Shown piece after piece: positions 1,160 through 38,059 of a stretch of 64,000 bases of DNA. The stretch is from Macrostomum hystrix (Eukaryota > Animalia > Platyhelminthes), in NCBI GenBank assembly GCA_950097015.1, contig CATNEN010000032.1:434001-498000 (forward strand), written 5' to 3'. The notes beneath the pieces are model-generated. The model did not search any database. It saw only the letters and a list, made by a program, of their open reading frames with translations, and was not told the DNA's origin. Each line of letters begins with the position of its first letter. Position 1 is the stretch's first letter. Made by a program: the position numbers and the translations under genes.

Positions 1160-1755
1160 CATCACACCCTCTCCTCTCCTCTCCTCTCTTCTTCTCTCTT
1201 ATCCTCTCCTCACCACTCCTCTCCTCTCCTCTCCTTTCCTCTCCTCGCCTCTCTTCTCCTCTCCTCTCCTCTCCTCTCTTCTCCTCTCCTCTCCTCTCCT
1301 CTCCTCTCCTCTCCTCTCCTCTCCTCTCTTCTCTCCTCACCTCTCCTCTCCTCTCCTGTCCTCTCTTCTTCTCTCCTATCCTCTCCTCACCACTCCTCTC
1401 CTCTCTTCTCCTCTCCTCTCCTCTCCTCTCTTCTCTTCTCGTCTTCTCCACTCTTCTCTTTTCCTCTCTCCTCTCCTCTCCTCTCCTCTCGTCTCTTCTC
1501 TTCTCGTCTTCTCCACTCTTCTCTTTTCCTCTCTCCTCTCCTCTTCTCTCCTCTCCTCTCCTCTCCTCTCCTCTCCTCTCCTCTCCTCTCCTCTCCTCAC
1601 CTCACCTCTCCTCTCCTCTCCTCTCCTCACCTCTCCTCTCTTCTCGTCTTCTCCACTCTTCTCTTTTCATCTCTCCTCTCCTCTCCTCTCCTCTCCTCTC
1701 CTCTCCACTCCACTTCTCTCCTCTCCTCTTCTCTCCTCTCCTCTTCTCTTCTCTA
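1160..1755. repeat. (CTCCT)n polypyrimidine microsatellite
   Basis: Degenerate pentamer array; it explains the SSPLL/ERRGE ORFs. Confidence 0.95.
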
Positions 1756-2232
1756 CTTTACTTTCTAAACAACAAGTAATCTTGCTTTATTAATTTTCCA
1801 ATTTTTCTCAAACAGCATTGTCCCTAAAAAAACTTTCATTTCTCCAATGGGATCTTGACACGGGCTGCTAAGTATTTATTCAGACTTGACGCGTGTCTCA
1901 AGTACTCAATAATCGGCTCAGATACGAAAGCTTGTGTTGACGTTTCGAGTTTTTATGCTCATAAGGCCACAAAAACGATAGCTGAGGAGCTCTTGTCGCA
2001 GCATTAGAGGAAGCTGCAATTTGACATTTCTGATCCATAAACCAGCTGTCACTCAACACATGCCGGGGATATCTGGGAATAAGTCTATCTGGGAATATTC
2101 TCTCGAATGCTTATTCGATAGAATCCCTATAAATTCATAAATAATTGATTCTGTCTTCCATTCGGAACAATAAAAGTTATTGTTTTTGACATTCAAATTA
2201 GATTTTTAAAGTGAACCATTTGTATCAGCAAA

Positions 2233-2776
2233 TTCTCCTCTCCTCTCCTCGCCTCTCTTCTCCTCTCCTCTCCTCTCCTCTCCTCTCCTCTCCTCTCCTC
2301 TCCTCTCTTCTCTCCTCACCTCTCCTCTCCTCTCCTGTCCTCTCTTCTTCTCTCCTGTCCTCTCTTCTTCTCTCCTATCCTCTCCTCACCACTCCTCTCC
2401 TCTCCTCTCCTCTCCTCGCCTCTCTTCTCCTCTCCTCTCCTCTCCTCACCTCTCCTCTCCTCTCCTCTCCTCTCCTCTCCTCTCCTCTCCTCTCCTCTCC
2501 TCTCCTCTCCTCTCCTCTCCTCTCCTCTCCTCGCCTCTCTTCTCCTCTCCTCTCCTCTCCTCACCTCTCCTCTCCTCTCCTCTCCTCTCCTCTCCTCTCC
2601 TCTCCTCTCCTCTCCTCTCTTCTCCTCTCCTCTCCTCTCCTCACCTCTCCTCTCCTCTCCTCTCCTCTCCTCTCCTCACCCTCATCCACTCCTCTCCTCT
2701 CCTCTCTTCTCTCCTCTCCTCTCCTCTCCTCTTCTCTCCTCTCTTCTCCTCTCCTCTTCTCTCCTCTCCTCTTCTG
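2233..2776. repeat. Second (CTCCT)n microsatellite
   Basis: Same pentamer; shares variant strings with the 1160-1755 array. Confidence 0.95.
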
Positions 2777-3000
2777 AGCTTGAGCTTTGGAGTGTCTCAA
2801 ATCGGAATCTGAGAAGAAGTCGGGTGGAGACAAAGGATATTTTTTGTCTTGATGAGACTTGGGGTCTTGATTAGGGAATCTCTGAGTGTTGTAATCATAT
2901 TGGAATCATATTTGGGATCTATTTAAGACGTGGAATATTTAGGATTCAGTTGAGACTTAAAATCATGATTGGGATCTAGCTAAGACTTGGGATCATATTT

Positions 3001-3300
3001 GGGATGATGATTAGGATGATGATTGGGATGATGATTGGGATGGTGATTGGGATGATGATTGGGATGATGATTGGGATGATGATTGGGATGATGATTGGGA
3101 TGATGATTGGGATGATGATTGGGATGATGATTGGGATGGTGATTGGGATGATGATTGGGATGATGATTGGGATGATGATTGGGATGGTGATTGGGATGAT
3201 GATTGGGATGGTGATTGGGATGATGATTGGGATGATGATTGGGATGATGATTGGGATGGTGATTGGGATGATGATTGGGATGATGATTGGGATGATGATT
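3001..3300. repeat. 12-bp tandem repeat (GGGATGATGATT)n
   Basis: About 25 units; source of the MMIG ORF. Confidence 0.95.
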
Positions 3301-5204
3301 GATATAGTCTATAGTTAACCTAAAATATATTTGGTACTTGCATGAAGAAGTTGTCCAGCAGCTCGGGTTCCGTACATCCTAGCGTGTGTACTCGGCCTCC
3401 GAAAGTAAAATTCAACATAGGAAACATTTTTCTTAAAAGAAAATGCAAGTCGAGTAAATCACAACTTATCCTGGATTTGGGAGGATCATAAAGCCGAAGG
3501 AAATGTGGATTTAGTCGGGAAACTGGGACATAAAATCAATTTCTGGGACTAGCGCCTCATCTCCCATCTCCCATCTCCCATCTCCCATCTCCCATCTGGT
3601 ACGGAGAGGAGGCAGCCAGAATAATGGGGGATAAACCATAGGATGCTTCATATTTGGCCCCGCCTCCCCAACTAGGAACAAAGAGGCGGTGTAGGGATAA
3701 ATCTCACTTGGATGCTCTTTATTATCTCTCGGCAATATTAGGGATGCGTGCTGTAAGAGGATAGATATAACCCGGGAATATATTGCACAGCGGCATGCCC
3801 ACAGCATCAATATCGCGATCCCTACAGGTTTTTTATATTCTTCCGACAAGTTGACTTCCTGCATGCAGCCAGTGCTTCTTGATCTTGACTGTGCTCTTAT
3901 CTCTGATGCCATATTGCGCAACACACAGGTCGAGAACTAATCTCGGACAATCTCGCTCGCACGCGGGACAGTTTTATGTCGCGACCTCGTTCAACGAATG
4001 CTGCGGCGACACAGGAAGAAATCTTTCAAAAAGATTCAAAGCCGTGAAATTCACTAAGGTCAAATAAATGAACAACCCATGCAGGCCCGGTTTGAAATTC
4101 TTGTTTCCCATGATTTTCTAGATTAAAATAAATCTACAAATTTAGCTTCCCGTAGGCCTTCCCGTAGGCTATAATCTCTATGGGGGTTATGAAAATTGTG
4201 TATTTTCGAGCTAGGATTAAGGAAAGTGTAAAGCTGTCAGTCAAAACTGCATGTATTTGCAATACAGTTTAAAATTATGATATTTTAACACCGGGCTGGT
4301 CAAAAGTCTGTGTACATCTGTTCAGTCCATGGACTTATAAGGCCGCCACACAAAATGAAACTTTCTATCACATCTCTCGATCGAAATTCGGATGCTCTAA
4401 CCACAGACAAGCAATTGACAAACAAACAATTGAACTCACCGAAAGTAGTTTGAATGTTCAACCTTTAGCTGTATGCATGATTTTTGTCAAGGCAAATGCC
4501 TCCTAATTTTTAGATTAGAGTCCTAGACCAACGGATTCTCGGAATTTGTGCCTTGTGGCAATTTCCTTCCAAGAAAAAAACTTTAAGCTTGGGGGCGAAG
4601 TTGGGAATCGAGGCCAGCCGACCAATCAGAATTCGCTTGGTCTCCCATTGGCTAGTTTGTTTTAGCACTCGAATACAGCAATGCCAGCAGTGACTCAGTA
4701 GGCGTTAATACTGAATGTCAGTATGAAGAATCTTTCAGTAATAACTGTTTTAATAGTGCTCTCGCAGAAACTCAAACATAAGAGATGCTTGACTGACTGT
4801 CTGCCTGTCTTCATTAAGTCGAGCGTGTGCTCTCAGTGAAGACAATAAAAATAACGGTCTATGACGGCCGCAATAAAAATAACTGTTGCACCGCAATATT
4901 TAATTTACGGCCGCTATCTTAATGCCTCCCTGCCTTGAGTCAGTGAGCCGCTTTTCTAGGGACCTGTCCATTTGGGGGAATTCGAATTCAGTTCGTGAAA
5001 AGTAATAAAACTTTTTGCTTCACACTTCCCTGCCATTATGATACCATATGCTGCAATAGAGAATTTTCTTCAAATGCAAAAATTCTTTACCACGACACTT
5101 TAGAGCTAGTTTCCCCTTGAATCCTTTCCTCACTTGTACTATCTAATATGCATTTCTCTGCCTTTCACTCTTCAAATATTTTCTTCTAGCACCCTCGTTT
5201 GCTC

Positions 5205-30577: not shown

Positions 30578-30900
30578 TGACTCACCTTTCTGACTCACCT
30601 GTATACTTCCTTACTCACCTGTATACTTCCTGACTCACCTGTGTACTTCCTGACTCACCTGTATACTTCCTGACTCACCTGTATACTTCCTGACTCACCT
30701 GTATACTTCCTGACTCACCTGTATACTTCCTGACTCACCTGTATACTTCCTGACTCACCTGTATACTTCCTGACTCACCTGTATACTTCCTGACTCACCT
30801 GTGTACTTCCTGACTCACCTGTATACTTCCTGACTCACCTGTATACTTCCTGACTCACCTGTGTACTTCCTGACTCAACTGTATACTTCCTGACAAACCT
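30578..30900 (-). repeat. 20-bp minisatellite whose unit contains a consensus 5' splice site
   Basis: Plus-strand unit TGACTCACCTGTATACTTCC reads GGAAGTATACAG|GTGAGTCA on minus; 14 intact CAG|GTGAGT copies plus one AAG|GTGAGT. Confidence 0.92.
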
Positions 30901-31051
30901 GTGTTTAATTGATTAATACGAGCTAAATCAATGATTGACATTCAAATTAATTTTCTGAAAAGCTGTGTGATGATTTTAAATATCAACAGAAATTTTTCGA
31001 GCGATAATGAATAAATAAAATGTAAGGTGTGCGGATTTTGGATTTTGCGAT

Positions 31052-34040
31052 TTAGGAGATCCGGTAGGTGACTGGGCCCAGCTTCTCGAGCACGCGGTAC
31101 GGCCCCAACCACCGCCGGCGGAGCGCCTTGGACTGGCCCTTCTGCACCGCGTATGGCGACCGCTTGGGGTGGAATGGTGTCGTCCTGGTCTTGCGAATGT
31201 TGAGCAGCCGGCACAGCTCCTGGAAGACGTCGCTTTCGAACTGGCGACCTTGATCGGAGTGGATGACCTCGGGCGACCCGTGGCGGAGGACGACGCTGCG
31301 CAGCATGGCTTCAGCGACCATGCGAGTCTCGATGTTGGTCGCTGGGGCCGCTTCGACCCACTTGGAGAACACGTCGGTGAAGCAGATGATGTACTTCAGA
31401 CCGGCCTCTGTGGCCAGCAGCGGTCCTTTGATGTCCACCTGCACCATTTCCCAGGGAGCTGACGCACGGTGTTGTCCTGCAGCGGCGCCCTCTGGTGCTG
31501 GTGCGGTACCTTGCGACGCTGGCACACCACGCAGCTGCTCACCCAGTGCTGGACGTCGTCCTTCAGGCCGGGCCACCAGGCTCTGTTGACGACCCTCGCT
31601 AGCGCCCTGTCCAGTCCGAGGTGCCCGCTTGCCGGGTCGTCGTGCAGCTGCCTCAGAAGCTCCTGGCGAAGCTGCAGCGGAATGACGGGGAAGCCGCTTC
31701 TCCTGATGACGCCGTCCTCGCCAAGCTCCAGGTTCTCCGACCTCACCAGGCTCTCTGCGTCGTCTGCGGCCCTGCCTCGCCGGGGCCTCCGTCCGATGAG
31801 CACCTGGCGAGCCGCCGCCAGCACCAGGTCATCGGCCTGCGCCGCGCTGATTTCCTCGTCCGACCAGGCGGGTGTCAGCCGGGTCGCCGCCGCCCGGCTC
31901 AGCGCGTCCGCCACCACGTTCTCGCGACGAGGCCTGAAGAGCAGTTTGAAGTTGATCTCCTGCAGGAGCGTGATCCACGTGGCCAGGCGACCTTCGGGTT
32001 CCTTGGTGTTCAGCAGCCCTTGCAGCGGCTTGTGGTTGGAGAAGACGAGAATTTCGCCGGCGGACGCCAAGTAGTTCCGGAAGTGCTTCATGGCCCACAC
32101 GACCGCCAGAAGCTCCCTGTGGGTGGTCGAGTAATTGCGCTCTGCCTTGTTCAGGACTCTCGACGCGTAGGCAACCGGGTATTCGACGCCTTCGTGGAGC
32201 TGGCTGAGGACTCCGGCGATGGCCACGCCGCTGCTGTCGCAGCGCAGCCGGAATCCCTTGGAGAAATCCGGCAGCTTCAGCACTGGGGGTGCCGACAGCG
32301 CCGACTTCAGCTCGCGCAGGGCCGCCCCGCACTCCCCCGTCCACCGAAATTGCCGACCTTTCTGAGTCGCCTGGTGCAGCGGATTCGCAATGCTGGCGAA
32401 GTGCGGCACGAACCGCCGGTAGAAGCCCAGCATGCCGACGAGCCGGCGAACTTCCTCAGCGCACTCGTGCGTCGGGATGGACTGGATGGCGCTGACCTTG
32501 TCCTGGGTTGGCTGGATCCCATCGGCCGAAATCTTGTGCCCCAGGTACTCGACCTCCTGGAAGCAGAAGCAGCTCTTGCGCTTGTTCAGCTTGAGGCCCG
32601 CCGACTGCAGCCTTACCAGGACCTCCTTCAGCGTCTGCGCGTGCTGCTCGAACGTCGTGCTGAACAGGATCAGGTCGTCCATGTAGGTGAGCACCTCCGT
32701 CCAGTTCAGCCCCGCCATCGTCAAGTCCATCAGGCGCTGGAAGGTCGTCGGGGCGTTGCAGAGGCCGAAGCCGAGCTTCCTGTACTGCATCAGGCCTTGC
32801 GTGGTGTAGAAGGCGGTCTTCTCCCGGTCCTGCTCGCGCAGCTCGACCTGCTGGAACCCTTGGCGGAGATCGAGCGTGCTGAACCAGCTGCTGCCAGTGA
32901 GCGCGTCCAGAGCGACAGACAGCGGCGGCAGCGGGTAGGCGTCCTTCACGGTGCACGAGTTGAGGGCCCTCCAGTCGGTGCAGATGCGGATCTCGTTGTT
33001 TTTCTTGCGCACCACCAGCAGATTGCTCGCCCACGGACTGCATGACGGCTCGATGATCCCGTGACGCAGCATCTCGCTGATCTTGTCGTCCACCTGCTGT
33101 CTGAAGTTCAGTGGCACTGTCCGCTGCCTGTGCTTGATGGGGCGGCTGCCGGGCTCCAGGTTGATCTCGTGCTGCAGCAGGTGCGTGGTCCCCAGGTCGA
33201 ACTCGTGACTGGCGAATGCCAGCTCATGCTGGTTCAGCAGGGCTTCGATGACCTCGCGCTGCGACCGGCTCAGATCCGGGTTGATTTTGAAGCCTCCTCC
33301 GCAGCTTCGGGCCCGTGAGGCTCGGCAGCGTCGAAGTTTCCGATGGCCTGGTTCTGGTAGAGCACCACCGGGTCGGCGCTCAGGTTGCAGACTCCCACCG
33401 GCAGGTTGCCGTCCGCGCTGGAGACCACCAGAGCCCGGTTCGGCAGCAGGCCGGTCTTGTCGACGAAGTCGGAGCTGGGCTCGAACAGACCCTGCTCAAT
33501 GGACGACGCCACCTTGACCGGGATGATGATGCGGCTGCGGGCTGGGATGGACACGGTGCTGGCGACCACGGCGGTGGGCACCACCCGGCAGGCTGGCATG
33601 GAGTTCCTGTCCGGCAGGACTGGGATCCTGGTTGACCCCAGCAGGACAGAAGACGATATGAGATCCACGCTGAAGGTTGAGCACATCTTGCTGATGGCGT
33701 CCATGCCGAGCACGCATTCCGGCTGAATGTCGGCGACCACCGTCACCGGGTGCTCCATGGGCGGCAGTCCGCCCAGCTGAATGGCCAGCGTTGCGCATGC
33801 CGGAGACTCCAAGGGTCGACCATCGATCCCGACCGGAGTGCTGAGAGGCGGATGAAGCTGAGCTGCGACTCCCAGAGCTCGAAACTGGGCAGCTGATACG
33901 AGCGTCACCTGCGCGCCGGTGTCGAACAGCCACCTGCGTGGCCGGCCTGCGATGCTGCCGGGCAGGAAGAGCGAAGCGGTTTGGGCCTTTCTAGGCAGGG
34001 CTGGTGATGGCCCGGGGTCACCAGTCCTCAGAAGTTTCCC
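31052..34040 (-). pseudogene. pol: Disrupted pol of element A (protease, RT, RNase H, partial integrase)
   Basis: Protease LFDTGA, RT LDLRQGF and YMDDL, RH CDSS and SNHKPL (TDH motif altered), IN HHCC finger, VDIKGP, HSDQG and GPY motif. Frameshifts near 33300 and 31470; in-frame deletion near 31165. Confidence 0.9.
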
Positions 34041-34864
34041 GAAGCCGGGGTCGGGCAGACCTCGGCCTGGTGCCCTTTGCCTGAGCAGCGGCTGCACATG
34101 GGTTGCACGGCTGGCGCGGCCTGCCTGGGGCACTGGGCCGCGAAATGGCCGGGCTGAGCGCAGTTAAAGCATTTCCCGCGACCACTGCCTCTCCCCCGAG
34201 CTCCTCTTCCTCGCGCACCGCGCTGTCCGCGGCTGCTGATGGTGGCGACCGTCGCAGCCAGGTCCGCCAGCTGCTCCTGCATCTGCTCCAGCCGGTCCGC
34301 CACTTGGCTGCTCACCGATGTCACCGCGATGCTTGCAGAGGCGCCTCTGCCGCCGATGCTCTCAAGCGCCGTGGCGCGGTCCGCCAGCTGCTCCGGGCTG
34401 CTGCTGCTGCAGTCAGCGTCTTTCAGCAACGCTTCACGAATCTCTTTCGACAGCAGAGCCAGCAGTCGGTGTCGCACTTCGCAGTCTCTCACCGTCTGAT
34501 CGTGGTCAGGGCGTGCCTTCCGGTACAGGAGCTTGAGAGCGTGGCACAGCTCCCTCAGCAACTCTCCTTGGCGTCGCTTCCGGCTCTCGAACTCCGACAT
34601 GGCGCAGAACGAGTTCTCCTTGCCACGGTAGAACTTGACCAGCTCGTCCTTGATGGTCGCGAAGCTCTTCTTCTTCCCCTCCGGCAGGTCCCACACGAAG
34701 ACGAGCGCCTCGCCAGATAAGAGCCGCCGGATTTTCGATGCCATCTTTTTGTCGTCCCACTCGGAATCCGTGGCGAAGTCCTCAAACATTTGCAGCCACA
34801 TGTTGATGTCGGCATCGTCTGAGCCCGAAAACTTGGGTGGCAAAAGTGCATTGGCGTGCGCCAT
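34028..34864 (-). CDS. gag: Gag of element A with two CCHC zinc knuckles
   Basis: 278-aa ORF; PPKFSG at the N-terminus; CFNCAQPGHFAAQC and CSRCSGKGHQAEVC. Confidence 0.9.
   Translation of the reverse strand: MAHANALLPPKFSGSDDADINMWLQMFEDFATDSEWDDKKMASKIRRLLSGEALVFVWDLPEGKKKSFATIKDELVKFYRGKENSFCAMSEFESRKRRQGELLRELCHALKLLYRKARPDHDQTVRDCEVRHRLLALLSKEIREALLKDADCSSSSPEQLADRATALESIGGRGASASIAVTSVSSQVADRLEQMQEQLADLAATVATISSRGQRGARGRGARGRGSGRGKCFNCAQPGHFAAQCPRQAAPAVQPMCSRCSGKGHQAEVCPTPASGNF
34034..34040 (-). other. -1 ribosomal frameshift slippery site G GGA AAC (element A)
   Basis: Heptamer in the gag frame just before the gag stop; pol is open in the -1 frame; a CTGGTGA/TCACCAG stem starts 9 nt downstream. 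Confidence 0.8.
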
Positions 34865-34885
34865 GAGTGAGTGGGCCGACTTGAG

Positions 34886-34898
34886 ACCGCTGCCACCA
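34886..34898 (-). other. Primer-binding site, tRNA-Leu (element A)
   Basis: TGGTGGCAGCGGT lies 1 nt after the LTR-terminal CA and is complementary to the 3' end of metazoan tRNA-Leu (...ACCGCTGCCACCA). Confidence 0.85.
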
Positions 34899-34899
34899 A

Positions 34900-35076
34900 T
34901 GTAAACTAAGTCAGAAGGCGAGACTTGCTCGAGAACCGAGAAAACACGTGGTGACTAAAGCCTCGAGTGAGCGACTTTATATTTGGCGATGTACACCAGA
35001 GAGTGTACATCGCATTGCACAATTTACGAAGCTAACTTACGACGCGATGCGAGAATGAATCACCGCACACCTTACA
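34900..35076 (-). repeat. 5' LTR of element A (177 bp, TG...CA)
   Basis: TGTAAG...TTTACA termini, adjacent PBS, internal ATATAAAG TATA-like motif. Confidence 0.82.
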
Positions 35077-35452
35077 AAAATAAACTGAGTGTCCACTGAA
35101 CTGTTGGTGGACACTGAATTACGGATAAATATAAATTACGAGTATATTGCTCGACTCTGAATCCAAAATCAAGTCACTTTAGGACGCAACGTTTGACATC
35201 GATCGGAATGCTTATTAGCTCGGAAGCCGGAAGAAATCTTACTGTTTCCAACGTTATAATGTACTAAAAGCTTTCTAATGATACACATTTTTATCCTTTT
35301 GTTTTTTGCGAGTTCTTAATCGTTGATTTCTAATCCATAGACTAAAAGGTAATGGGTATTAATACAAGGAATACTAAGTATTAATTTAACGCTTCATCAA
35401 AGCTCAGAGTCCACTGATAGTTACGTAATAGCCAATAAATGGTTGACTCAAA

Positions 35453-37688
35453 ATGAGAATCTGTTTTAGCTGTCGCGAAATTATCGACGGAGGTTCGGTT
35501 GTGTCAGAAGGAAATTTCTACCACCCGGAGCACTTCTGCTGTCACCGATGTCGGCAGCCGCTAGGCGATGGCTTTCACATGTGAGAAAAATCAATCCAGG
35601 TCATTGAGAGGGAATCCCTAACAACTGAGATAACACCCCGACTGTGCTCACGCCTACTCAATCCCTTGCAGCTATAAGGTTTGGCGACTATGCAACAACT
35701 GCTTGCCCAGGCCGCAGTGCTGCTCAAACGACTGCCCGATGCAGGACAAGCACATTGGGCACAACACTGGAACATTCTACCGACTGCCGGTGCACGACAA
35801 GATTGAAGCGTTCCACAGCTCACACACCATCAGGTCAGTCTGGTCCATGGCTATTGGCGATAGCGAATAGACATTTGCGAATTGGCGTTGGTGCTGGGAC
35901 AGTTGGTGCTGGGACAGTGAGTGCTGGGACAGTGAGTGCTGGGACAGTTGGTGCTGGGACAGTTGGTGCTGGGACAGTTGGTGCTGGGACAGTTGGTGAT
36001 GGGACAGTTGGTGCTGGGACAGTGAGTGCTGGGACAGTGAGTGCTGGGACAGTTGGTGCTGGGACAGTTGGTGCTGGGACAGTGAGTGCTGGGACAGTGA
36101 GTGCTGGGACAGTGAGTGCTGGGAGAGTGAGTGCTGGGACAGTTGGTGCTGGGACAGTGAGTGCTGGGACAGTGAGTGCTGGGACAGTGAGTGCTGGGAC
36201 AGTTGGTGCTGGGACAGTGAGTGCTGGGACAGTTGGTGCTGGGACAGTTGGTGCTGGGACAGTTGGTGCTGGGACAGTGAGTGCTGGGAGAGTTGGTGCT
36301 GGGACAGTTGGTGCTGGGACAGTTGGTGCTGGGACAGTGAGTGCTGGGACAGTTGGTGCTGTGAGGCACATCAGGCACAACGATAGTAACCAAAGTCAAA
36401 GCCTTCCTCTCCCAGATGCAATGTCTGCGGTCGCGGTCTATTCTGCAGTGGGACTGGGCCTTCAGAGAGCCTTGCCTACCATCTGAATGAGGGCGCTGTG
36501 AACTGCACTCGCTGCTACTATCGTTTGAATCAGTTCGGTAGGTGGCAAAGGCTGCCTAAGAGGCGCAACAGGCTGCCAAGCTTCAGTCGCTACAAGCCGC
36601 CTCTGCCAGATGAACTGGTTAGACTAAGCCCCTTTGAGAAGCGACAGCAGCAGCAGATGATGAGCCAGCTGCAGTGGAGTCAGGCTTTGGCTAAGATAAA
36701 TATGCGGAACAAACAATTGTTTCTTAGCGTACCGCCGCTGCTGCCGAGTTTTCGGAATGCACAGAAGCTCGCAGATCTAAGATGTAGACGAGACAAAAAA
36801 TATTATAGTAATCATACCGCGACTGATCTCAACCTGGCGAAGTGGACGGTGCCGAAACGGAATTCGGCCTCACATTTCGAGGCCGAAACGAAAGATGTGA
36901 AACGAATAAATACAAAGCGTGCTGCCAGCAAAACGCCAGTAGAAAACACAAAAAAGCGTGCTTTAAGTAAAACGTCGGACAAAAGTACAAAAAAGCGTGC
37001 TTTAAGTAAAACGTCAGATAAAAGTACAAAAAAGCATGCTGCCAGCAAAACGTCAGATAAAAGTACGAAAAAGCGTGCTGCTAGTAAAAGTTCAGAGAAA
37101 AGTGCAAAAGCACCTGCTGCCGGTAAAGCGTCAGATAAAAGTACAAAAGCACCTGCTGCCGGTAAAGCGTCAGATAAAAGTACAAAAGCACCTGCTGCCG
37201 GTAAAGCGTCAGATAAAAGTGCAAAAGCACCTGCTGCCGGTAAAGCGTCAGAGAAAAGTGCAAAAGCACCTGCTGCCGGTAAAGCGTCAGATAAAAGTAC
37301 AAAAGCACCTGCTGCCGGTAAAGCGTCAGATAAAAGTACAAAAGCACCTGCTGCCGGTAAAGCGTCAGATAAAAGTGCAAAAGCACCTGCTGCCGGTAAA
37401 GCGTCAGATAAAAGTGCAAAAGCACCTGCTGCCGGTAAAGCGTCAGATAAAAGTGCAAAAGCACCTGCTGCCGGTAAAGCGTCAGATAAAAGTGCAAAAG
37501 CGCCTGCTGCCGGTAAAGCGTCAGATAAAAGTGCAAAAGCACCTGCTGCGGGTAAAGCGTCAGATAAAAGTTCAAAAGCACCTGCTGCCGGTAAAGCGTC
37601 AGATAAAAGTGCAAAAGCGCCTGCTGCCGGTAAAGCGTCAGATAAAAGTACGAAAACGCCTGCTGCCAGCGAAGCTTCCAAAAAATAA
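35453..37688 (+). CDS. Protein with two LIM domains and a long Lys/Ala/Ser-rich 13-aa repeat tail, about 520 aa as assembled
   Basis: join(35453..35580,35672..35833,36416..37688), phases 2 and 2. LIM1 CFSC-x16[10 protein letters not shown]...CNNC; divergent LIM2 CSNDC...HSSHTIRCNVC...CTRC; tail ([13 protein letters not shown])n. Confidence 0.82.
35888..36360. repeat. 15-bp minisatellite (GTGCTGGGACAGT[TG/GA])n in intron 2 of the LIM gene
   Basis: About 31 units lying between the donor at 35834 and the acceptor at 36415. Confidence 0.93.
36917..37680 (+). repeat. Coding 39-bp tandem repeat, about 19 units
   Basis: The period is a multiple of 3 and the frame is preserved; 5' units are diverged and central units are homogeneous. 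Confidence 0.9.
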
Positions 37689-38059
37689 AAAAGCCTGATG
37701 CCAGTAGAAAGCCACACAAGAACACCAATCAGCGTGCTGCCAGCAAAACGCCAGAAAGGAATGCCAAAAGTCGTGCTGCCAGTAAGACAGACGGCAAGTT
37801 ACAAGTTAGACATTTAGACAAAATTTGTGATGATGCGACATTCTTGACTAGGAAAACATTCAGTAAGGTAAATATCAATGCTAGCTTCTTATTTAGGCTT
37901 TTAAGTGCCATTTTTTGCTTTCATATCATTGTGATTGAATGCTCTGGACTCCATTACGAAGTAAATTTCAGTCTGAAATCCTCAGTATGAGGACTTCGAT
38001 TTAGAGTTATAAAGGTAGCGAGTTTTTCTTAAATTAATGCTGGACTAGTTAATAAATAG

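Follow-up and report, generated by a model that had tools for sequence, protein, structure and literature searches.

Structure of the locus

The window analysed here is a 64-kb stretch of Macrostomum hystrix DNA, and positions 31021-35076 on its minus strand hold a copy, 4056 bp long, of a Gypsy family whose full length is 4951 bp and whose LTRs measure 177 bp (Table 1). Identity to the family is 97% across 3.9 kb. The 177-bp 5' LTR, the PBS and gag are all present, as the original prediction had described; the PBS start is common to the nine full copies of the family, from which this copy diverges only near the PBS end. Pfam matches in four ORF pieces give the domain order protease, RT, RNase H and integrase on the minus strand, with gag upstream.

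The far end is built differently from that of a full copy. Here pol stops 540 bp before the normal end, at family position 4411, and about 363 bp (pol 3' end, UTR and PPT) are absent together with the whole 3' LTR. Beyond the truncation lie 34 extra nt. The outermost 14 of these, TGTAAGGTGTGCGG, are an inverted copy of the LTR start that sits exactly at the boundary between element and host: the exact reverse complement stands at 35063-35076, with AAAA next to it, and the match to the LTR stops at 14 nt, position 15 already departing from it. The exact inverted LTR start and the AAAA on both sides, both claimed beforehand, can be read directly in the sequence, and the claimed absence of PPT and 3' LTR and the U3-type tip at each end are likewise supported. 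The filler had been put at about 20 nt; it is exactly 20 nt long, with the correction that family homology ends at 31055. The last codons of the pol remnant read ...GPYRVLEKLGPVTYRIS, and the first triplet of the filler on the minus strand supplies the stop codon.

Table 1. Parts of the M. hystrix copy and its flanks, with positions in the window.
Feature	Position	Strand	Basis or remark
Left target duplication, AAAA, 4 bp	31017-31020		Direct reading; family duplication length 4 bp in 9/9 full copies
Inverted U3 tip, 14 nt, exact copy of the LTR's first 14 nt; aberrant 3' terminus	31021-31034	+	Direct reading
11-mer in tip and filler	31034-31044	+	Exact reverse complement of host flank 35160-35170
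Filler, 20 nt	31035-31054		Family homology breaks at 31055
Integrase C-terminal patch (GPY/F, SH3-like), 96 nt, family positions 4316-4411	31055-31150	-	Partial Pfam Integrase_p58_C / SH3_Tf2-1 matches
17-nt patch, family positions 4077-4093	31151-31167	-	Lies between the private 222-bp and 141-bp deletions
pol remnants: protease, RT, RNase H, integrase zinc finger, part of integrase core	31168-34133	-	ORFs; Pfam gag-asp_proteas, RVT_1, RT_RNaseH, Integrase_H2C2, rve
gag ORF, 278 aa, CCHC zinc knuckle	34028-34864	-	Length equal to that in a full copy
Primer-binding site, begins TGG	34882-34899	-	Direct reading; directly after the LTR
Complete 5' LTR, 177 bp, TGTAA...TTACA	34900-35076	-	95-96% identical to other LTRs
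Right target duplication, AAAA	35077-35080		Direct reading
Host-flank 11-mer	35160-35170	+	Reverse complement lies in the filler at the opposite end

The family and the decay of the copy

Full copies of the family have the standard layout: the two LTRs, with TG...CA tips, are in direct orientation, a PBS follows the first and a PPT precedes the second. In a full copy, pol is a single ORF of 1250 aa. The nine full copies that were measured differ from each other by 0.04-1.0%, and each is flanked by a perfect 4-bp target duplication. Among the four deleted copies in which both outer flanks could be read, at least two have a perfect 4-bp duplication, and the remaining two deviate from it by a single base or position. 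The target sequences are varied and AT-rich. Deletion derivatives are frequent, among them one whose LTRs are identical; errors of copying during transposition or close to it are therefore common in this family. The family is otherwise young and ordinary, and the copy described here is an old, broken member of it. The surroundings of the copy are rich in satellites and transposons.

The copy is dead. It has accumulated 2.2% private substitutions, and its pol, which the original prediction had taken to be normal, contains two frameshifts (4 nt deleted near 33295 and 1 nt near 31465) and two private deletions, of 141 bp at 31168 and of 222 bp at 31151. Both private deletions lie at short direct repeats, and together they remove the catalytic glutamate of the integrase. 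The junction that this double deletion created at 31151-31167 has no second occurrence genome-wide. Three rearrangements cluster within the last 150 nt of the element.

Uniqueness of the aberrant junction

The left junction occurs nowhere else in the 220-Mb genome. Its recurrence at other loci had been proposed as a sign of mobility as a unit; since the junction is unique, the copy has never moved as one. Searches with patterns of 29 and 24 nt spanning tip and filler (3 mismatches allowed) and with the 14-mer plus any base other than T returned only the 31021 locus and two ordinary LTRs with point changes. The possibility that 31021-31058 is the start of a separate LTR family, named beforehand as what would speak against the prediction, was rejected, as no such family turned up in these genome-wide pattern searches. 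Because no other LTR family begins in this way and the junction is unique, the tip is unlikely to be the remnant of a different element.

A search for other inverted U3 fragments of at least 20 nt found none, all 39 matches to the first 20 bases of the LTR being ordinary LTRs or known fragments. A partial LTR match on C7 and an unpaired 5' LTR match on C1 proved unrelated, being two copies of one duplicated host segment that contains a truncated fragment. No paralogous empty site was found in the genome, and both flanks are unique.

Chance matches and the origin of the filler

An exact inverted match of 14 nt within 34 unmatched nt is expected by chance with a probability of about 1e-7. For the flanking repeat, the probability that two 4-mers drawn at random from the local sequence agree is 0.005-0.011. 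The target and both flanks are A-rich, and a chance match of AAAA is not negligible.

For the 20-nt filler, no element template was found: the best local alignment with the family does not exceed what shuffled sequences give, 0.51 of which reach its score. A placement by MAFFT at LTR positions ~100-120 gives 17/23 identities in A-rich sequence and was treated as chance. The 11-mer at 31034-31044 has a single match in the 64-kb window, which lies in the host flank on the opposite side of the element, 84 nt past its end (P ~0.002-0.02, post hoc). Part of the filler may therefore have been copied from host DNA beside the other end, and for this reason a purely reverse-transcriptional origin of the junction is in doubt.

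Proposed integration through two U3-type ends

Both termini are U3-type tips, PPT and 3' LTR are gone, the AAAA repeats have the length typical of the family, and the separate-LTR-family alternative has failed. Therefore, the most economical reading is a single integrase-made insertion of an ordinary Ty3/Gypsy retrotransposon through two U3-type ends, which we consider evenly poised between right and wrong. Of the earlier proposal of an aberrant reverse-transcription product integrated through two U3 ends, it is the two ends that stand, while the purely reverse-transcriptional origin is weakened by the host-like 11-mer in the filler. Most likely, the structure goes back to a single accident of integration through two "start" ends and does not represent a new kind of mobile element. 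We infer that the integrase made both joints; it would have attached two U3-type DNA tips at a single target site, thereby producing the usual 4-bp duplication. The first tip would be that of the normal 5' LTR, and the second would be the 14-nt inverted U3 tip, followed by the 20-nt filler and the truncated pol.

The second tip could have been supplied by two routes, to which we give roughly equal weight. In route (a), two cDNA molecules would each have contributed one U3 end to a single integrase complex, and error-prone end joining by the host would then have connected their loose distal ends, with loss of nearly all of one molecule. In route (b), the growing DNA strand would have made serial forward template jumps inside the particle, giving rise to the two direct-repeat deletions, and would then have jumped onto the 5' end of the plus-strand DNA, where run-off would leave an exact inverted tip. 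Since its insertion, the copy has decayed in its satellite-rich region and has transposed no further. Template switching is known to yield retroviral proviruses that keep the 5' LTR intact but carry a deletion on the 3' side, a few of them with inverted segments (PMC9278108). In the literature searched, nothing specific was found on in vivo U3/U3 integration or on inverted cDNA dimers.

Each route has its cost: in route (a) one molecule must lose almost 5 kb, and in route (b) the second strand must be completed in an awkward way. The host match of the 11-mer does not fit route (b) and is explained only loosely by route (a). The two-U3 reading as a whole has a single example.

Alternative explanations

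It is unlikely that two independent copies of the family met head-on and that a later deletion spared only the first 14 nt of one and took 540 bp from the end of the other, with the filler at the joint and a coincidental AAAA match, as in the null model of the original prediction. Nesting and deletion are common in a region as rich in satellites and transposons as this one, end joining typically leaves filler at deletion joints, the copy with its 2.2% private substitutions is old enough for later deletions, and the flanks on both sides are A-rich. Nonetheless, such a history requires the 4-mer coincidence estimated above and a deletion endpoint no more than 14 nt from an element tip, in a family with only ~27 loci in 220 Mb, none of whose pairs of LTR matches within ~5 kb is in opposite orientation. 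Quite unlikely, too, is a one-ended integration, in which the integrase joined only the normal U3 end and host end joining attached the broken far end of an incomplete cDNA, adding inverted patches from the U3 tip and the host flank. Vector proviruses of ASLV and HIV with one normal junction and one truncated end, which can be linked to host sequence or to extra viral DNA of either orientation, provide a precedent (PMC5041404), and the M. hystrix copy likewise has one normal junction, at the 5' LTR, and one truncated end with extra sequence. The 11-mer from the host flank, 84 nt off the target site, would fit local patch copying, and three rearrangements within the last 150 nt are also in line with this history. 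The host duplication at such ends, however, usually amounts to hundreds to thousands of bp, or is replaced by a deletion (PMC5041404), while the flanks here show exactly the normal 4-bp repeat of the family, although a host deletion or rearrangement at the site may also have occurred. In addition, there is no reason for a copied patch to begin exactly at the U3 tip and to abut the host, and no priming path could be drawn that gives AAAA directly followed by the tip.

We regard it as improbable that a normal two-LTR copy was inserted at AAAA and that a later break near its 3' end was repaired by template switching, keeping the terminal TGTAA and adding 9 nt from the opposite-strand 5' LTR. This would retain the target duplication without any unusual integration, TGTAA is common to the U5 and U3 tips and could serve as microhomology, and the patchwork of clustered deletions resembles serial template switching. 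On the other hand, the break would have to fall no more than 5 nt from the element end, the inverted template would lie 4 kb off, and nine templated bases followed by unrelated filler are an ad hoc requirement. An assembly artefact, either a mis-join or a consensus error at the left junction, is highly improbable. The locus does lie between satellite arrays on a small contig; yet the 220 Mb are assembled into just 42 contigs, the sequence on either side is unique rather than repetitive, and mis-assembly does not produce a clean, unique 34-nt junction with matching 4-bp flanks.

Several other origins were rejected. Since the U5 and U3 tips agree in TGTAA alone, a leftover of the U5 end of a 3' LTR does not account for the 14-mer. 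The junction of a two-LTR circle would be direct rather than inverted, and the junctions worked out on paper for autointegration products fail to give pol followed by an inverted U3 tip beside host DNA. A LINE-mediated retrocopy is ruled out by the complete U3 and the absence of poly(A).

Comparison with known systems

Judged by its sequence, the copy is by descent a damaged member of Ty3/Gypsy (Metaviridae-type, without env). It shares with this group the TGTAA...TTACA tips of the LTR, the PBS after the LTR, the CCHC knuckle of gag, a pol with protease, RT, RNase H and integrase (H2C2 finger, rve core and GPY/F-type C-terminal module) and the short target duplication of fixed length, here AAAA/AAAA. 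In contrast to the two LTRs and PPT of Ty3/Gypsy elements, it has a PBS but a single LTR and no PPT, and where a full element would finish in U5 it carries the inverted U3 tip of 14 nt.

Aberrant retroviral proviruses include forms with asymmetric LTRs and inversions (PMC9278108) and forms in which one end was inserted by the integrase and the other by host enzymes (PMC5041404). The M. hystrix copy resembles them in its truncated far end, joined to inverted element DNA and possibly to host-derived sequence, and in its deletions of the template-switch type at short repeats. In asymmetric-LTR proviruses, however, the deletions mostly end in U3 or R of the 3' LTR and the far end is kept, whereas here it is gone. 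Host-mediated insertions usually show an abnormal host duplication, in contrast to the normal 4 bp of this copy, whose extra DNA at the boundary is exactly the U3 tip.

Ginger1 elements have TIRs of 40-270 bp starting with TGTNR and use CCGG or CCGT targets (Bao, Kapitonov and Jurka 2010, PMC2836005). Inverted TGTNR termini, a 4-bp duplication and an internal Gypsy-type integrase with a GPY/F motif are common to Ginger1 and the M. hystrix copy. The Ginger-specific features considered (TIR length, target sequence, RT-free content and copy number) all failed to appear in it: its inverted tip, starting with TGTAA, measures 14 nt, and its target is AAAA, agreeing in the 4-bp length alone. Ginger1 is a cut-and-paste DNA transposon that encodes a transposase and no RT, gag or protease, whereas RT, RNase H, protease and gag are all present here; Ginger1 forms families of many elements, whereas the M. 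hystrix structure exists as one copy with a broken integrase gene. The "Ginger-like intermediate" is only an analogy, and the claim of a structural intermediate between LTR retrotransposons and TIR transposons, drawn from one dead copy, could not be upheld.

Implications

Taken alone, a single dead copy that shows no trace of having moved again supports plausibility only and not an evolutionary step. According to Bao et al. (2010, PMC2836005), a route from an LTR retrotransposon to a Ginger-type element would need a layout of this kind, for which they could propose only the chance nesting of two elements. It is conceivable, at slightly under an even chance, that a Gypsy integrase in a living animal inserted in a concerted manner DNA with two inverted U3 tips and so created in one step a TIR-bounded, TSD-flanked unit containing an integrase gene. 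If the integrase made both joints, the locus would be a natural in vivo record of a Gypsy integrase accepting two U3 tips with a normal duplication, and one accident, instead of two nested insertions, could then be enough to place inverted LTR tips on both sides of an integrase gene. This would bear on the possible descent of Ginger-type DNA transposons from Gypsy elements and on the frequency of aberrant integration products hidden in long-read assemblies.

Structure of the aberrant copy

The original prediction described a Gypsy element with one LTR, closed at its other end by an inverted LTR tip, and this structure is confirmed. By alignment, homology of this aberrant copy to the full copies of its family ends at window position 31055, which is position 4411 in the 4951-bp family sequence. 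The copy lacks the entire 3' LTR and, ahead of it, 363 bp comprising the final 82 codons of pol, the 3' UTR and the PPT. These are replaced by 34 nt, consisting of a filler and a 14-mer that exactly matches LTR bases 1-14, the U3 tip, in inverted orientation. The chance of such an exact inverted 14-nt match within 34 unmatched bases is approximately 1e-7. The normal U5 tip has no more than TGTAA in common with the 14-mer, which is therefore not a worn 3' LTR. AAAA abuts the aberrant copy on both outer sides.

Features of the aberrant copy and of the satellite arrays in the window
Feature	Window position	Strand	Basis
Gypsy-type LTR retrotransposon copy, 4056 bp	31021-35076	minus	read from sequence
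5' LTR, complete, 177 bp, tips TGTAA...TTACA	34900-35076	minus	read from sequence
PBS	immediately past 5' LTR	minus	read from sequence
gag ORF, 278 aa, CCHC knuckle	aberrant copy	minus	ORF scan and domain search
pol pieces: protease, RT, RNase H, integrase H2C2 finger, partial rve core, start of GPY/F-type C-terminal module	aberrant copy	minus	ORFs and domain search
Filler, 20 nt	31035-31054
14-mer	31021-31034
Satellite, 20-bp (~16 copies)	30586-30902
Satellite, 15/60-bp	35887-36361
Satellite, 39/78/117-bp array	36914-37755
Larger array, 8/16-bp period	~12.9-14.5 kb
Larger array, 31-bp period	~59.2-61.7 kb

Just upstream of the aberrant end, alignment to the full copies also revealed two deletions private to this copy, one of 141 bp and one of 222 bp, each at short direct repeats; they left patches of 17 and 96 nt and removed the catalytic glutamate of the integrase. 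The rest of the copy contains only indels of 1-9 nt, two of them frame-shifting. Judged from its sequence, the copy is old and dead, because it carries 2.2% private substitutions, compared to 0.02-0.7% in the other copies. Features similar to its RT piece come chiefly from arthropod and other eukaryotic elements, and its host is an animal. The copy sits in a unique island of about 1 kb amid satellite arrays.

Origin of the aberrant end

A single integrase-made insertion with two U3-type tips is the most economical reading of the locus, and to this extent the original interpretation is supported. The probability that two 4-mers from the local sequence agree is 0.005-0.011 (AAAA frequency 0.011-0.015), and the exact duplication of family length favors one staggered cut over any model of independent flanks, with a likelihood ratio of about 70-200. 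Fusion by deletion of two independent copies inserted head-on, the null model of the original prediction, requires precisely this 4-mer coincidence and in addition a deletion that ended 14 nt from a tip. If a normal copy had been repaired later, a break at most 5 nt from its end and a template 4 kb distant would have been needed. One-ended integration, with the far end joined by the host, is an established class, whose truncated ends bear host DNA or additional viral DNA, the latter in either orientation; however, the host duplication in this class is usually large, or is replaced by a deletion (PMC5041404), and the model does not predict that the extra DNA is an exact tip beside a 4-bp repeat. 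Mis-assembly is unlikely, as the junction is clean and unique and the flanks match.

An insertion with two U3-type tips could arise by two routes. Two cDNA molecules, each providing one U3 end, might enter one integrase complex, and their loose distal ends would then be joined by error-prone end joining of the host. During concerted integration in vitro, two separate donor ends are routinely used. Alternatively, the growing strand inside the particle might undergo serial forward jumps at short repeats, and a last jump to the 5' end of the plus-strand DNA, followed by run-off, would generate the exact inverted tip. In HIV proviruses, template-switch deletions with an intact 5' LTR and, occasionally, inversions are documented (PMC9278108).

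For the filler, no template was found within the element. Read as its reverse complement, the 11-mer at 31034-31044 exactly matches the host DNA at 35160-35170, 84 nt past the other end, and this is the sole 11-mer match in the whole window (P 0.002-0.02 by shuffles, post hoc). If this match is real, synthesis of the filler took place at the target, inside the nucleus, which favors the two-cDNA route or a host-repair model over jumps inside the particle.

Comparison with Ginger elements

Ginger1 is a cut-and-paste DNA transposon with many elements per genome and a transposase resembling Gypsy integrase; its TIRs of 40-270 bp start with TGTNR and are flanked by 4-bp CCGG/CCGT duplications (PMC2836005). 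What the aberrant copy shares with Ginger1 is limited to the TGTNR tips and a duplication of 4 bp; the length of its TIRs, the target sequence, the genes it contains and its copy number all differ. On these grounds, it is a damaged Gypsy element and neither a Ginger element nor a mobile intermediate.

Likewise, there is no evidence for the predicted mobility as a unit: the genome contains a single occurrence each of the junction, the tip-plus-filler and the double-deletion joint. No separate LTR family beginning with the tip-plus-filler exists in the genome; other 14-mer occurrences without the following T are only ordinary LTRs with a point change, and each of the 39 genome matches to the first 20 bases of the LTR belongs to an ordinary LTR or a known fragment. 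A paralogous empty site is absent from the same genome because both flanks are unique.

The aberrant copy is an aberrant retroelement integration product of a kind already known, while its form is new. It is unclear through which events an LTR element would become a DNA transposon; a pair of nested, oppositely oriented elements has been proposed (PMC2836005). At best, the locus shows that a single accident might leave an integrase gene between inverted LTR tips.

The family in the genome

Searching the window's own genome (220 Mb, 42 contigs) revealed about 27 loci of the family, including nine full copies of 4950-4952 bp, with one of 5484 bp. Eight of these are 0.04-0.44% apart and the ninth diverges by about 1%. 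LTR pairs show 0-2 mismatches in seven of the nine; for the other two the ungapped count fails due to an indel in one LTR each. Both ORFs, gag (278 aa) and pol (1250 aa), are uninterrupted in the one full copy scanned. All nine are flanked by perfect 4-bp target duplications of varied, AT-rich sequence.

Internally deleted copies are frequent, and among the four with both outer flanks read, the 4-bp duplication is perfect in two and deviates by one base or position in the other two. One deleted copy carries identical LTRs, which dates large deletions in the family to transposition or close to it. Joint microhomology ranges from 0 to 16 nt across the deleted copies, a pattern suggesting that template switching in reverse transcription often causes deletions. 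Loci L056 (C7:3436000-3441000), L055 and L053 hold very young copies with internal deletions, one of which combines identical LTRs with a 1.4-kb deletion and a 4-bp TSD.

Locus L052 (C2:7844500-7851500) is a tandem family array (LTR-internal-LTR-internal-LTR) in which both units have one 2.36-kb internal deletion in common (family positions 1730 to 4088, about 16 nt joint overlap). A truncated fragment, comprising the LTR start and the first gag bases to family position 249, lies at L050:6333-6444 and L057:8252-8500, in a stretch of host DNA present in duplicate, on contigs C7 and C1; identity between the flanks is 96%, and a further internal deletion affects one of the two copies.
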